The position numbers and the translations under genes are program-made. A stretch of 38,179 bases of DNA from Pelomyxa schiedti (Eukaryota > Protista > Evosea). Under the pieces are notes generated by a model. That model saw only the letters and a program-made list of their open reading frames with translations. It ran no database searches and had not been told where the DNA came from. The stretch covers positions 1-38,179 of the forward strand of contig JAHLWZ010000958.1 of assembly GCA_020536535.1 (NCBI GenBank), written 5' to 3'. Positions within the stretch are counted from its first letter, which is position 1. The number at the start of each line of letters is the position of its first letter. Below are positions 11,622-16,966 of this stretch, one piece after another.

Positions 11622-14015
11622 TTAGGATTGTTTGTTGACCAGAGGAAGGAAAGGTATTGCCCCTCTTTGTGCTGAGTCCACCCACCACCTCCCAAACACA
11701 TAAGTTCCACACTCAAACTGAATCAGCCAGTGTGACTGACTGTCAACTCCCCTGACAACTCCCTCAGCCCCTCGGTTGCTGGCATTTGGGTGCACAATGA
11801 CCACATGTGACCCCTTGCTCAGGTTCAGTGTGGTTGTCGGGAGTGGTGTTTCTGATTCAACAACCCCGGTTGGTGTCGTTGCTGATGTAGATGCAGTGTA
11901 TTCCACGAGTTTGTGGTTGTGGATTCCGGTGTGTGGGTCATATGGTAGTCCGCTGAATATGTCTCCAGGTGGGAATTCTGACAGGGAAGAGGCCGGTGGG
12001 ACTGTTGTGATGCCGAGGGCGGTGGCGAGGAGCCGCAGGGCGTCATCAAGCCGCGACCATATTCGCAGAACACTCTTGGAATCCAACGGGGTTTGCTGCA
12101 GGTTGATAATCACTGTGCCTATCGCTTTGGGAGGGTACATTAGTGACTTCTCGGCTGGTGTTGAGGCTTGTCTGTCTGCATTCATGCCGGAGAGGCTGCA
12201 GAAAAAAAAAAAAAAAAAAGGTATATGTGAATTTTTGCTGAAAGGTGTGGCCAAGCGGAAAAGAAGATACCTTGTGCCGAGGCATAAGCACAAATCAGCT
12301 GAAACTTCCGTTCTTGACAATGAGGTAAACAAATCTGCTCGGAGATTGCTTCCAAACTGAACTGATTTGCATATGAGTTTATAGAAAAGAATTCCCAACA
12401 CCACTCACCGACTGGATTGCTGGGATCATAAATTCCACCATGAATTTCATTCATTTTTTCTTGAGGGAATCCAGCTTTTTGAGGTAACCTAACTTAGGGG
12501 GTAATACGGGCTGAGAATTTTGAAGAGCTTACCCGTCGTGGTTCTGTTGTACAAAGTGCTTAAGATACCCAGCCTTTTCCATTGCCGCTAGTACATGGTG
12601 TGATAGAGAAGGACGAGCTTCATACATAGAGGACACTGTGACAGAAGTATTGGATACACTTGACAGATTTTTTGTAGCGTAATCAGATATTCCAGCTGAT
12701 TTGCTATGTTCAAGTAAGGTGAAAAGTAACACACACAATTGATACCTTAAACCAGCACCAGTGTAGGCCACACAAAATTTACTACGTTTCACATATTCAG
12801 CTAGGCGTAGCACTTTTTCTTCTAAAACGCTCTGTTCGTCCAGGTACTCATGCCGTGGAAGTGAATTTCCGTGGTCAGACCGAGCCGCTGACGGGTCAAA
12901 TGTAACCATTTTTGGGGTCACCCAACTTGGGTGTCCTCCAAAACCATGAGCCTCTTTCCAGTCTCCCGTCAGCCGCTCCATTTCTGGCTAAGAGTACTTA
13001 GTGCAAGATCGAAATGAAATGAGTGTGTTTGCTACTCAGATTACCGTCAAAGTGGTCGCTTTGCCTGTCTTGGCAGCCTTTCCTTTTGTTGGAGGGGGAG
13101 GAGGGGGCGGAGGAGGGCTTGTATTAGCCGGACTCGGTGTGTCAATTATAGGCGTTGGAGTAGGTCCCTTGGGTTTCACATCCAATCTTCTTTCCCCGTC
13201 AATAGCTCCCTTTTCAAAGGCCAAGTTTCCACCACTACAAATGATAAGAAGAGGGATGCGCTGTTAATTGACTTACATCACTTTTCCTACAACAGCTCCT
13301 TCTTCATCATCCACAGGGCAGTACTCTTTGCCCTCATAATAAACCTTTGTTTGCCTTGACAGAAAAAAAAAAAAGAGCGTTAACAAGGGAAAAAAATGGT
13401 CTGTGTGCATACGTGCAGCTTACAAGAGAGATAACTGAGGGATGTCTCCCAGAATTCCATTGTTCAAGAAGATGCAATGTAATCTGTTAATGGCTAGTAG
13501 TTAATGAAATACTCACTCTGGGTGAATGGACTCGTACATTCTTGGAATTAGACACAGTAATTGTAGGTACATCAGTGGATACAGTAATTTCACAGGCTGA
13601 GCACTTGATAATCTCCATGCTCTTTGTTGTAATGACACAACGAATGGTGAACTTACTGTCAGCGCAATTCTCACAAATGACCTAAGTGCAGATGCTCAAT
13701 TAGACTCTAATGGTGAAAATTCTTAAGAGTGTTTCCACACTTTCACAGCGGCGCCATCCACTGTCACAACAGAATTTTCACTGACTCGAGAAAATAACAT
13801 GAGCTCATCCCTGGCGGTCCTAGAGGCCGAATTGTCTAGGTTCAAATTCAAATGCGGCCCTGTGTACTTCCTTCCATACGAGCGAACATATTTAGTGCAA
13901 CAGGCATCAAATGCAATCAATCATTTGAAAACAAAAACCTATTTGCCCTGGATGCATTGGAAGCAACAGCACCGGTTGCTCTTCTTCTCAACTCGTTGAA
14001 GTCAATACCCGCCAT
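11622..14015 (-). CDS. CAP_C/CARP beta-helix + poly-Pro + sirtuin (class IV-like, Zn ribbon absent) fusion with small beta-rich C-terminal domain
   Basis: N-terminal SENSVVTVDGAAVKVICENCADSKFTIRCVITTKSMEIIKCSACEITVSTDVPTITVSNSKNVRVH resembles cyclase-associated protein C-terminal repeats. Next is PPPPPPPPP, then an in-frame 57-nt intron (12988-13044) into the sirtuin motifs YTGAGLSKSAGISDY, RPSLSH, QQNHDGL, EIHG, LGTSL, VIINLQQTPLD. Confidence 0.85.
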
Positions 14016-14079
14016 TGCTTTGTTTTTTTTTTTACCCTTCTGCGAATGAGTGATGACGGTTCGTTTCCCAAAAAAAGCG
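14016..14079. promoter_or_regulatory. Putative minimal bidirectional promoter (64 bp)
   Basis: Divergent ATGs at 14015(-) and 14080(+), each preceded by an A-rich tract on its own strand. The start codons are inferred. Confidence 0.5.
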
Positions 14080-15516
14080 ATGTCTGACGCGTGCCAGTGC
14101 CGGGCAATTCTGTCCGCACGCGCCCAACTTGGTGCCCTAGCGTTGTTGTGCCTCGATGGTCTTCGCCAAGGCAGCAATCTTTTGGCATCAGCAGCGACAG
14201 CAACAGCAGCAGCAGAACAAAGCAGCTCGGCTCGCGGCGGGTGGCGACGCTGCGGCGCCCACCTCGTAGCGCGGCTGGTGTGGGCCTACGTGCTCGACAC
14301 GGCGACGCAGGCCATGGTCGAGGTGCAGGGGGTGTGGCGCGACGGCGGCGGCGGCGGCAGCCAGAAGGGGGGGGACCAGTGCGGCCCCGAGGGCGCCGAG
14401 TGCGTCGCGATGGCGGTGTCGCCGCTCACCCTCGGGCTCCTGGGCCCGGCCGAGCGCCTCGCCCCGGCCGTCGGGTGCGCGTTCGTCGACCAGGCGCACT
14501 ACTTGGCCCGAACCACCACGGCCGAGGGGTGCGAGGAGTGGCACTTGCGGGAGGCGCCCAGGATAGATTGTGGGACGAACACGCGCGGACACGGGGGAAA
14601 TACGGACGTGGACGAGAATGGGAACGTGGACGTGATAACGAGGGCGCCGGCGGGGTTCTGTACAGTGGAGTTTTGTGCAAACGGGAATTGGCTTGTGGAC
14701 TGTGGTTATTTTGAAGGTTTGTATAGTGATGGTGGTGATTTTGAGACGGCTATGATTGTAGTGCCTATTGCTGGGGAAAAGAGGGCCAGTGTAAAACAAG
14801 GGGTGGTTGTGGGGGGTACTGGTGATTGTGGCATTTTCTCGGTTGTTGTGCCTCTTCGAGACTGTTCCATGACGGACCTGCCACTTCTCACTTTCAACGA
14901 GCAAGTCCCAGATGAACTGATTCTTGCCGTGTTCTCGTCAGCTAATAGGGACTTGAATCTCCTGCGGATCGACTTGCAAAAAACCTTCACCAGCAGGACT
15001 CTCACAGTTACCAGCTCCACATCCTGCAAATCCTTACCCGATCACTACGTAATGGACGCGCTCCACTTCACGAGGCCAAGCGGCCCCGGCGTTTTCATCG
15101 TCAGTGCCCAGGACTTTCGCAAGCACATGGCCAAAACCTGGCAAGTGGAAGAAACCACCGGCAACAAGACGGACCTCGTCGTGTCCCTGTTCGACACCAC
15201 GGAGTCGTCGTGGCTGAGCGGCTCCAGGTTCACCGTCTGCCACTCAAAAAGCCAGTCGTGCGAAGTCTGGGACTGTGACACTACCACCGACAACGAAGGC
15301 GGAGGCGGGGGCACAGGCGCCAGGACGCCGGCGATTGTCAAGACTCTTTCGTTCTCTGGGTCCTGCAGCAGACCGCCCAGAGCCAAATCGGGATTCGTTT
15401 GCTACGTTGTCGGCAACCGAGTGGAGGTGGCCGACATACAGTCCGGCATCACATTTGTCGCCCTCACGTTCCCCCAGTGGAACGTGCTCAAGATCTCCCA
15501 GGCCTTGTTCTTCTAA
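14080..15516 (+). CDS. Intronless hypothetical protein, lineage-expanded family (paralog 1; beta-rich C-terminal region)
   Basis: Uninterrupted ORF 14050..15516, with likely ATG 14080 after an A tract. It aligns along its length to the next ORF (ARAQLGALA, VSPLTL, DQAHYL, EETTG, SWLSGSRF, CEVWDC, LTFPQW). Confidence 0.88.
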   Translation: MSDACQCRAILSARAQLGALALLCLDGLRQGSNLLASAATATAAAEQSSSARGGWRRCGAHLVARLVWAYVLDTATQAMVEVQGVWRDGGGGGSQKGGDQCGPEGAECVAMAVSPLTLGLLGPAERLAPAVGCAFVDQAHYLARTTTAEGCEEWHLREAPRIDCGTNTRGHGGNTDVDENGNVDVITRAPAGFCTVEFCANGNWLVDCGYFEGLYSDGGDFETAMIVVPIAGEKRASVKQGVVVGGTGDCGIFSVVVPLRDCSMTDLPLLTFNEQVPDELILAVFSSANRDLNLLRIDLQKTFTSRTLTVTSSTSCKSLPDHYVMDALHFTRPSGPGVFIVSAQDFRKHMAKTWQVEETTGNKTDLVVSLFDTTESSWLSGSRFTVCHSKSQSCEVWDCDTTTDNEGGGGGTGARTPAIVKTLSFSGSCSRPPRAKSGFVCYVVGNRVEVADIQSGITFVALTFPQWNVLKISQALFF

Positions 15517-15676
15517 AGCCCGTTTGTTTGCATTCAGGAGTTCTTGGAGGGAAAAAAACCCAGGTTTCACGGTCACTTTGGCGTTCGCATCCTCCGTCAT
15601 CCGTTACTCCCAGCGCCCCACATTTGCTGTCATCCCCGATTCTAGGGCCAGAGATCAGAACCGTTTTTTCTGCGCG

Positions 15677-16966
15677 ATGCCACGTCACGTGCTCACACGG
15701 GCAGCGCTGTCGGTGCGAGACCAACTTGGTGCGCTGGCGATGGCCTCGCACGGCCGATGCGGGGGACATGCAACGTTCCGCGGCAAAGCGACGCACGACG
15801 GGGTGCCGGCTCCAATTGTGGGTGCAATGATCGAGCACGGCCACACGATACTCAGGCACGTGCAGGCCTACATCGTGGCGACGCTGGCCAAGGTCATAGT
15901 GGTCGTGAGTGCCGACGAACTCTCCACCTCGAGAAAAACGGTCGGCGCTGTTCTTCTGAGGGTGTCTCCCCTCACTCTCGCGATTATGGGTGACGCCGAG
16001 GACACCTTTCCCTCTTTCGATTGGGTTGATGAGGCACATTATCTTGTGGTGACAGATGACCTCAGATGGGGGTCCATTTGCTGTTGGAACCATCACCTTC
16101 AAACAGAGGGCCAGAACGACCACCGCAGTACATGTGAATGGCAGCTCTGTCCTTGGCCTACGGGATATTGTTCTAATTTGGCATTGCCCTTATGTGGCAG
16201 CACAAAGTGGTCGGTGGGCTTCGCGGAAAAAGAGTGCACCGACCACCAAGTGTGCATGATGATTCAGCCAATTGGGAGGGCTTGTCAACCACAAATGGGA
16301 GGCCCTCTGGTTGTTGTTCCTGTACCAACCACAGGAAATCCACGAGTGATCCAAGTGGCGAATTTCAACAAGGTTGCTCCAAAGGACGTTTTAATAGTTG
16401 TGACAAGCAGGATGTCAGGTGATGATATTTATTTCATAATCGTCGATGTGAATCAGACATACACCTCAAGGAGCCTATGTGTTCTAGGCATCACACACTA
16501 CACAGGGATGGTACTGGATTTTATGTGGGATGTATGCCACATGCCGAGGCAGAATGACTCATACTGTGACGGATACTTCATTGTTCACTTCCGCAGGCCT
16601 GACTTTGACTGGGAAATATGCCAATTGGAAGAGACCACTGGAATTAAAAGAACCCTGGTTAGTTCTAACCACGCACTGGGGATATCATGGCTGGGTGGTT
16701 CCAAGTTCTCAATTGCTCATAAAGCTGGCTCAGTTGCTTGTGAGGTCTGGGACTGTTGCAGCATCAAAGGCAGAGTGGGGCCCATCCCACACAAAGTCAT
16801 TGAATCCAGTGCCATCGCAGCCACTAGTTCAGTGGAAGGTCCCTTTCTGTTCCACCTTGTCAACAACCAAATTGCTGTTCTCGATGTTGTTTCTAGTTTC
16901 ACTGTTGTCACCCTCACATTCCCAAACTGGACCAACCTCAATGTGCGTGAAACCTTGCTGTTCTAA
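15677..16966 (+). CDS. Intronless hypothetical protein, same family (paralog 2)
   Basis: ORF frame 15275..16966, likely start MPRHVL at 15677. Motifs VRDQLGALAMASHGRCGG, VSPLTL, DEAHYL, EETTG, SWLGGSKF, CEVWDC, LTFPNW. Confidence 0.88.
   Translation: MPRHVLTRAALSVRDQLGALAMASHGRCGGHATFRGKATHDGVPAPIVGAMIEHGHTILRHVQAYIVATLAKVIVVVSADELSTSRKTVGAVLLRVSPLTLAIMGDAEDTFPSFDWVDEAHYLVVTDDLRWGSICCWNHHLQTEGQNDHRSTCEWQLCPWPTGYCSNLALPLCGSTKWSVGFAEKECTDHQVCMMIQPIGRACQPQMGGPLVVVPVPTTGNPRVIQVANFNKVAPKDVLIVVTSRMSGDDIYFIIVDVNQTYTSRSLCVLGITHYTGMVLDFMWDVCHMPRQNDSYCDGYFIVHFRRPDFDWEICQLEETTGIKRTLVSSNHALGISWLGGSKFSIAHKAGSVACEVWDCCSIKGRVGPIPHKVIESSAIAATSSVEGPFLFHLVNNQIAVLDVVSSFTVVTLTFPNWTNLNVRETLLF

Follow-up and report, generated by a model that had tools for sequence, protein, structure and literature searches.

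The joining of a CAP_C domain to a sirtuin has been described in SIR8, a class-IV sirtuin family of sponges, corals and jellyfish (Gold and Sinclair, Mol Biol Evol 2022; PMC9486876). CAP_C (PF08603) lies upstream of SIR2 in about half of the SIR8 members; the proteins that bear it come from sponges, corals and an anemone and number six in Table S1 of that study (for example XP_011406188.1 of Amphimedon), and the family, which has been reported from animals only, is dated to about the animal origin or stem (PMC9486876). The Amphimedon protein was modelled by the same authors, who saw no predicted ligand or activity around CAP_C and left its role open (PMC9486876). A motif of about 9 residues is shown there as specific to SIR8. 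The present work concerns a gene that appears to join the same two kinds of domain in the anaerobic amoeba Pelomyxa schiedti. It lies on the minus strand of contig JAHLWZ010000958.1 (assembly GCA_020536535.1), of which a stretch of 38,179 nucleotides (nt), called the window below, was analysed, and its product is a 615-residue protein, labelled “sirtuin-7” in GenBank and referred to here as P0011. On balance, and with moderate confidence, P0011 is read as the product of one gene that combines a divergent CARP domain, a linker of nine prolines, an intact zinc-less sirtuin of the SIRT6/7 type and a C-terminal KOW-like barrel.

The first-pass annotation of this DNA, which had proposed the fusion, also stated that no description of it was known. 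That statement does not hold, since the CAP_C-sirtuin pairing has been published for SIR8 (PMC9486876); what is new is the zinc-less scaffold and the amoebozoan lineage in which it occurs. The scaffold belongs to a large family of zinc-less, SIRT6/7-like sirtuins with a KOW-like barrel, which swaps reader and targeting modules and is apparently undescribed: a description of it was sought in the searchable literature and none was found. A paper combining the term “CARP domain” with a sirtuin, or a functional follow-up of SIR8, was likewise not found there.

Domain composition of P0011 and its family

The recognizable parts of the protein are encoded at the following positions of the window.

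13463..13782, minus strand: match to the CAP_C/CARP beta-helix (codons of residues 56-124, exons 2-4, two introns included)
13090..13116, minus strand: nine proline codons (residues 207-215, exon 6), followed by a lysine- and alanine-rich tail
12000..12948, minus strand: sirtuin catalytic domain (approximately residues 244-490, exons 7-11), class-IV-like and without a zinc ribbon
12440..12442, minus strand: codon of the catalytic His384 (NEIHG), a column without variation in the 106-sequence family alignment
11634..11888, minus strand: KOW-like beta-barrel (residues 528-612), common to the whole zinc-less sirtuin family

The N-terminal region is probably CAP_C/CARP-like, as had been proposed from the sequence at the outset, with the qualification that the match is borderline and partial and extends over about 70 residues. 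Evaluated against the curated Pfam cut-off for CAP_C of 23.8 bits, the whole protein scores 27.3 bits (residues 56-124), and residues 1-232 scanned alone score 24.0 bits; within residues 1-232 the same stretch also matches TBCC (PF07986) at 14.7 bits, which is under that family's cut-off of 24.8 bits. A sequence search of the PDB with residues 1-175 returned a single match, to the C-terminal domain of the Cryptosporidium cyclase-associated protein (2b0r, E 1.5e-4, aligned residues 52-136). The full product is required for these assignments, in that both the CAP_C and the SIR2 signals are sub-threshold when single exons are scanned with Pfam. A Pfam scan of P0011 for two hallmarks of CAP, the N-terminal helical folded domain and WH2, matched neither.

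The CARP region of P0011 has so far been seen in this one protein. When residues 1-175 were submitted to a word-based protein search, only the query itself came back, a metagenome scan for CARP relatives returned nothing, and phmmer of the region against 160 fetched relatives of P0011 also returned nothing, which leaves no second protein with a detectable CARP domain among the 160 relatives fetched at that stage (266 in total). Structure prediction gave a mean predicted local distance difference test (pLDDT) score of 33.6 for P0011 when AlphaFold was run on the single sequence; when it was run with the family alignment, from which the CARP domain is absent, residues 50-122 were predicted as short regular strands with pLDDT 50-69. 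The whole-model lists obtained with Foldseek and VIA-align were filled by the sirtuin domain and gave no fold for either the CARP region or the barrel.

The sirtuin half is, judged by its motifs and its modelled fold, a catalytically intact sirtuin of the SIRT6/7 type that has no zinc ribbon. Pfam SIR2 (PF02146) matches P0011 at 44.7 bits against a cut-off of 24, and the best PDB sequence matches of this half are SIRT7 (1.2e-23) and SIRT6 (about 2e-17), with other sirtuin classes at 1e-8 or weaker. The alignment to SIRT7 is lost just past the catalytic His and recovered ahead of the GTS strand, and because the aligned blocks are separated by 24 residues in P0011 as against 66 in SIRT7, the Cys4 zinc ribbon is missing. 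With the 106-sequence family alignment, AlphaFold models residues 235-615 at pLDDT above 90, and this model superposes on SIRT6 (Foldseek 1.4e-16; VIA-align Z 24.1, root-mean-square deviation 2.7 A over 223 residues), while the defence-type SIR2 proteins ThsA, HerA-Sir2 and Avs5 give Z values of 9-10.

The catalytic His was correctly recognized as retained in the first-pass annotation, and it is accompanied by the motifs GAGxS (G307-A308-G309-S311), QNHDG (Q364-N365-D367-G368) and GTS (G423-S425), whose listed residues do not vary among the 106 aligned sequences. None of the 22 invariant columns of the family is changed in P0011, and of the 81 columns that are conserved at 85% or more it retains 80, the single deviation being W387I, in which the near-invariant Trp that follows the catalytic HG is replaced by Ile. 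This retention of conserved columns indicates that the enzyme half is under normal constraint. The cosubstrate loop of P0011 reads GISDYATK; the class-IV form of this loop, GIPD(F/Y)R(G/S) with its Arg, is absent.

The last approximately 85 residues are modelled by AlphaFold, at pLDDT above 90, as a barrel of five strands and a helix. Assignment of this barrel depends on the family profile: a profile of the barrel region of 36 members (A4) matches the KOW domains of SPT5 (3.6e-6), uL24 and NusG in the PDB, and the Pfam KOW motif (PF00467) is matched by 10 of the 36 members, with a best E of 1.1e-5. The barrel of P0011 scanned alone gives no KOW match in Pfam, its sole match being DUF4314 (E 0.0085).

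The family itself was collected using HMMER against 1.8 billion representatives together with a word-based search, and these produced hundreds of relatives of P0011 from protist transcriptomes and metagenomes; their source labels include MMETSP and EukProt, and a Physarum transcript and an Odontella entry are among them. The relatives (P0013-P0266) have the core and the barrel in common with P0011, at 40-53% identity. Among the 183 full-length members the spacing from the catalytic His to GTS has a median of 39 residues, and two CxxC motifs in between occur in none of them. Two further features are general in the family, a cosubstrate loop of the form DYA[ST]K, where SIRT6 and SIRT7 have D(F/Y)R, and a KOW-like barrel that ends WW..A..G..P..P. 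Around this constant scaffold the other members carry zf-UBP with UBA, YEATS (N- or C-terminal), SAP, CAP-Gly or a CaaX end; P0011 is the sole member seen with CARP, and it alone has Ile at the position of Trp387.

At least six further paralogs (P0175, P0185, P0199, P0226, P0016 and P0073) are present in P. schiedti. P0016, which is encoded on another contig, ends in the CaaX-like sequence CLLM, the corresponding ends of its homologs P0013 and P0213 being CTIC and CFMQ, and the domain at its C-terminus is recognized by hhalign as a divergent YEATS domain (97.3%, E 1.6e-11, as against 0.1% for CARP). A CAP-Gly domain (45.5 bits) lies upstream of the sirtuin in P0095, which has a metagenome or transcriptome source, and with it the family has a second module of the cytoskeleton type. 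Another member, found at L001:1934-3921 (GCA_025450795.1), begins a few residues ahead of W..HG without any N-terminal module and has a YEATS domain at its C-terminus; it has been split into several open reading frames by a prokaryote-style gene caller. The Acanthamoeba protein AcSir2 was considered as a characterised relative and was set aside: it has two CxxC pairs, the usual Arg motif and a YEATS domain, and is therefore a canonical class-IV sirtuin outside the zinc-less family.

Gene model and the junction between the two halves

The deposited gene range of P0011 matches the spliced range exactly, and a chain of 11 exons on the minus strand, read from 14015 to 11622, translates to P0011 without mismatch. 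The coding range, its exons (which when spliced give the coding sequence of P0011) and the elements that bear on the junction are as follows.

11622..14015, minus strand: whole coding range of the P0011 gene (ATG 14015-14013, stop TAA 11624-11622)
14015-13939, 13870-13741, 13681-13538 and 13483-13413, minus strand: exons 1-4
13354-13277, 13234-13045, 12987-12746 and 12703-12533, minus strand: exons 5-8
12488-12409, 12361-12271 and 12195-11622, minus strand: exons 9-11
13045..13234, minus strand: exon 6, a low-complexity linker (residues 167-230) with a guanine-plus-cytosine (GC) content of 0.53 and no in-frame ATG
12988..13044, minus strand: intron 6 (57 nt, GT..AG, phase 0, GC 0.37), between the CARP/poly-proline half and the sirtuin half
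12979..12981, minus strand: internal ATG (Met233), where a separate sirtuin could begin if there are two genes
12704..12745, minus strand: intron 7 (42 nt, in frame and stop-free), read-through of which adds 14 residues to the GAGxS NAD-binding loop

All ten introns are of the GT-AG type, with lengths of 42-75 nt and GC contents of 0.33-0.43 as against 0.39-0.53 in the exons. Their number and type are consistent with the genome as a whole, in which genes are reported to have 7.4 introns on average and 98% of the introns to be GT-AG, and which was annotated with Augustus followed by PASA/EVM refinement using transcriptome data (PMC8887013). The peptides quoted in the first-pass annotation are recovered in this model: intron 2 (13740-13682, 59 nt, GT-AG) joins ..NSVVTVDGAAVK to VICENC.., and SMEIIKCSACEITVSTDVPTITVSNS is encoded in exon 3 on the minus strand. 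Between 13540 and 13354 the annotated model has introns of 54 and 58 nt on either side of a 71-nt exon (13483-13413); a 10-exon model with a single intron of 172 nt in this interval was dropped, as the 11-exon model suits the intron sizes and reproduces P0011. The search for occurrences of P0011 found it on the GenBank contig only.

The junction between the two halves is formed by intron 6, whose removal joins ..KATTLT to PEMERLTGDW.. in frame, as had been predicted together with the nine prolines that precede it. If the intron is retained, the reading continues GTA ATC TGA and stops at 13038-13036. In-frame Met codons in the P0011 coding sequence occur at residues 1, 50, 91, 233 and later, none of them in exon 6, and since that exon is also open upstream into the CARP exons, it needs those exons.

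The evidence that carries the fusion comes from P0175, the sister paralog of P0011 in the family tree (support of 96 in the SH-like approximate likelihood ratio test, SH-aLRT). The first intron of P0175 is of phase 0, lies 9 codons before the Trp of W..HG and is identical in position to intron 6 of P0011, and the intron that falls between NPV and V is also common to the two genes. Exon 1 of P0175 consists of a poly-proline run followed by a lysine- and alanine-rich tail, resembling the end of exon 6 of P0011, and the N-terminal tails of the other P. schiedti paralogs differ from this type. These likenesses indicate that the common ancestor of the two genes already spliced a poly-proline exon onto the sirtuin exon. 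A tblastn search upstream of P0175 found no CARP exons, only the poly-proline tract; because the tract is shared with this CARP-less protein, it came with the sirtuin and not with CARP, and because the pair formed by P0011 and P0175 sits within a set of CARP-less proteins, CARP was most likely gained on the lineage of P0011. In P0011 the 5' poly-proline exon of an ordinary family member, which P0175 still has, comes after exons that encode the CARP domain. Taken together with the deposited gene model, which corresponds to the in-frame fusion originally proposed, the conserved intron position makes it likely, on sequence evidence, that P0011 is a true CARP-sirtuin fusion.

Intron 7 provides a further point about the sirtuin half. 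When the longest open piece was used as a database query, P0011 proved identical to the window over this piece except for the absence of the 14 intron-encoded residues, and correspondingly the query of 152 residues, which reads through the intron, was aligned by the search to 138 residues of P0011. If this intron stayed in the mRNA, the enzyme would probably lose its activity and yet not be truncated. A reading based on open reading frames passes through the same 42 nt (12704-12745) uninterrupted.

At 14016-14080 and 14050-16000 (plus strand), a divergently oriented neighbour gene has a coding range that ends about 65 nt from the ATG of P0011. Its 918-residue product has no Pfam match, and the GC content of its first 2 kb is 0.60, as against approximately 0.45 in the rest of the window.

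Alternative explanations and proposed function

A number of observations weigh against the reading of P0011 as a fused, actin-directed deacylase, and they are best considered together with the alternatives that they favour. The splicing of the interval 13044-12988 is a prediction from the sequence, and annotation may instead have merged two adjacent genes, one encoding a CARP/poly-proline protein of about 233 residues (..TLTVI, ending at the TGA at 13036) and the other a sirtuin of 383 residues that begins at the ATG at 12981. The in-frame stop lies three codons into intron 6 and the ATG two codons past its acceptor, other members of the family can start just before W..HG (P0013, and the open reading frame of the L001 homolog, whose start is equivalent to Met233), and P0011 is the only CARP-bearing member seen. 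A splice-site weight matrix built from 39 introns of five paralogs, which discriminates poorly in this genome, places the intron 6 donor above 91% of decoy GT sites and its acceptor no better than 44% of decoy AG sites, so that the acceptor is unremarkable. The short distance from TGA to ATG was considered as proof of fusion and rejected: the stop of P0199 is separated by 34 nt from the next gene on the same strand, an alpha-amylase (L006:4093-4128, as annotated), and since same-strand coding sequences can be so closely spaced in this genome, the gap of 52 nt is compatible with two genes. Against this explanation stand the intron of the same position and phase in P0175 together with its similar poly-proline/lysine 5' exon, so that an ancestral 5' exon of the sirtuin would have to have been captured by an upstream neighbour gene; the length and GC content of the interval, which are those of a typical intron; the Augustus/PASA/EVM model, in which the two halves are fused; and the failure of a search of the records to find a product that starts at Met233, which is weak evidence. 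The existence of two genes is accordingly considered unlikely, though not negligibly so, and in that event the finding would shrink to an ordinary family member beside a small CARP protein.

If the fusion is accepted, the questions that follow are what the CARP domain binds and what reaction the enzyme half catalyses. In the proposed mechanism, the core of P0011 would be a lysine deacylase that depends on NAD+, and possibly an ADP-ribosyltransferase as well, and the variable modules of the family may direct the enzyme to different substrates. A CARP beta-helix at approximately residues 40-175 would be the N-terminal module that plays this part in P0011, as a targeting or dimerising domain, with G-actin or a CAP-type complex as the leading candidate partner; actin is placed first because CAP_C outscores TBCC. 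Actin binding, the recruitment of profilin or SH3 proteins by poly-proline and a part in actin or CAP acylation, which the first-pass annotation had brought up, are hypothetical. The fusion may also be real and the CARP domain not directed to actin, in which case it could be a dimerisation or scaffold domain, a domain of the TBCC/RP2 type that binds tubulin or an Arl GTPase, or a neutral recent appendage. This is a substantial possibility, although less probable than not, and a dimerising role or a partner of the tubulin/Arl type is equally as possible for this CARP domain as actin. CARP domains occur also in TBCC, RP2 and TBCCD1, the weak TBCC match covers the same residues, P0095 carries a CAP-Gly domain, which binds tubulin or EB tails, and the SIR8 authors saw no predicted ligand or activity around CAP_C (PMC9486876). 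The domain is, moreover, very divergent: the assignment is based on a borderline score across about 70 residues in which the AlphaFold fold is not confident, and the other CAP hallmarks were not found in P0011. What speaks for actin is that CAP_C passes its cut-off, that the sole PDB sequence match is the C-terminal domain of a CAP, and that the animal CAP_C-SIR2 fusions (PMC9486876) suggest that the pairing is not random. The enzyme half, for its part, may not be a deacylase, and could instead be an NAD+ glycohydrolase, a protein ADP-ribosyltransferase or a non-catalytic binder of NAD+ or acyl-lysine. The Arg of the SIRT6/7 cosubstrate loop (DFR/DYR) is replaced by Ala in P0011 and across the family, and this replacement together with the family-wide loss of the zinc ribbon implies that the chemistry could differ from deacylation; the Ile that P0011 alone has after the catalytic HG points in the same direction. 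SIRT6 and SIRT7 deacetylate weakly and also have ADP-ribosyl and long-chain deacylase activities, and the zinc-less SIR2 proteins of bacterial defence are NADases; both facts count towards such an alternative. The remaining class-IV catalytic motifs (His, QNxDG, GTS) are, however, invariant across the family, and the fold matches SIRT6 far better than it does ThsA, HerA-Sir2 or Avs5. A function other than deacylation is consequently rated as improbable, and a predicted deacylase remains the preferred reading of the core.

A more far-reaching interpretation is that CARP was fused to a class-IV-type sirtuin twice, in SIR8 and in Pelomyxa, and that the fusion was selected because CARP delivers the enzyme to monomeric actin or to a CAP-type complex, which would make them enzymes devoted to the NAD+-dependent removal of acyl groups from actin lysines. 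Two reports (PMC7555357, PMC11589041) connect HDAC6 and a CAP/acetyl-actin complex with the regulation of the formin INF2, and regulation of INF2 by this complex makes an actin deacylase conceivable. Since no second CARP-bearing member of the family was found, selection on the fusion cannot be shown, and the interpretation is regarded as doubtful, the least probable of those discussed here. A second and probably independent occurrence of the CAP_C-sirtuin combination, in an amoebozoan and on another scaffold, would make the pairing appear to be due to selection and not to chance. P0011 would also offer a second system for asking whether CARP targets a deacylase to actin monomers, a question that is tied to the CAP/acetyl-actin/INF2 connection. 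The zinc-less sirtuin family with the KOW-like barrel, whose modules include zf-UBP/UBA, YEATS, SAP, CAP-Gly, CaaX and CARP, may be a more useful lead than the fusion itself.

Comparison with known systems

The CARP domain of CAP/Srv2 is the one that P0011 matches, with CAP_C above its cut-off and 2b0r as the only PDB match; only approximately 70 residues can be aligned, however, and neither the helical folded domain nor WH2 of CAP/Srv2 was detected in P0011. The two proteins also differ in the placement of the poly-proline tract, which precedes CARP in CAP/Srv2 and follows it in P0011, where it was inherited from the sirtuin lineage. The order of the elements and the origin of the tract imply that CARP and poly-proline are not a transplanted segment of CAP. 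The first-pass annotation had named both as fused to the sirtuin, and the presence of both elements stands; the tract is not part of a CAP-like block, as it occurs in the CARP-less P0175 as well.

Human SIRT7 and SIRT6 are the best matches of the enzyme half in both sequence and structure, and have GAGxS, QNxDGL..G.P and ELHG-type motifs in common with P0011. They possess the Cys4 zinc ribbon and DF/YRG, in place of which P0011 has a deletion of approximately 40 residues and DYA[ST]K, and P0011 adds to their architecture the C-terminal KOW-like barrel, the N-terminal CARP domain and the poly-proline tract. The resemblance to HDAC6 is one of logic only, in that HDAC6 is a lysine deacylase, directed to the cytoskeleton, with non-chromatin targeting modules; its zf-UBP domain is found in family sisters of P0011, but it belongs to an unrelated superfamily, that of the zinc hydrolases.

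The system that most closely corresponds to P0011 is SIR8, which has the same order of domains, CAP_C being followed by a SIR2 domain that clusters with SIRT6/7. SIR8, known here from the published table and alignment, aligns with SIR6 through the zinc-ribbon region (published supplementary Fig. S4), a region that P0011 and its family do not have, and P0011 is for this reason not a typical SIR8. The two also differ in their phylogenetic setting: SIR8 is an animal family, whereas P0011 is an amoebozoan protein, nested among CARP-less proteins of protists and sister to the CARP-less P0175. The comparison of these sequences suggests that the fusion in Pelomyxa probably arose independently of the one in SIR8.

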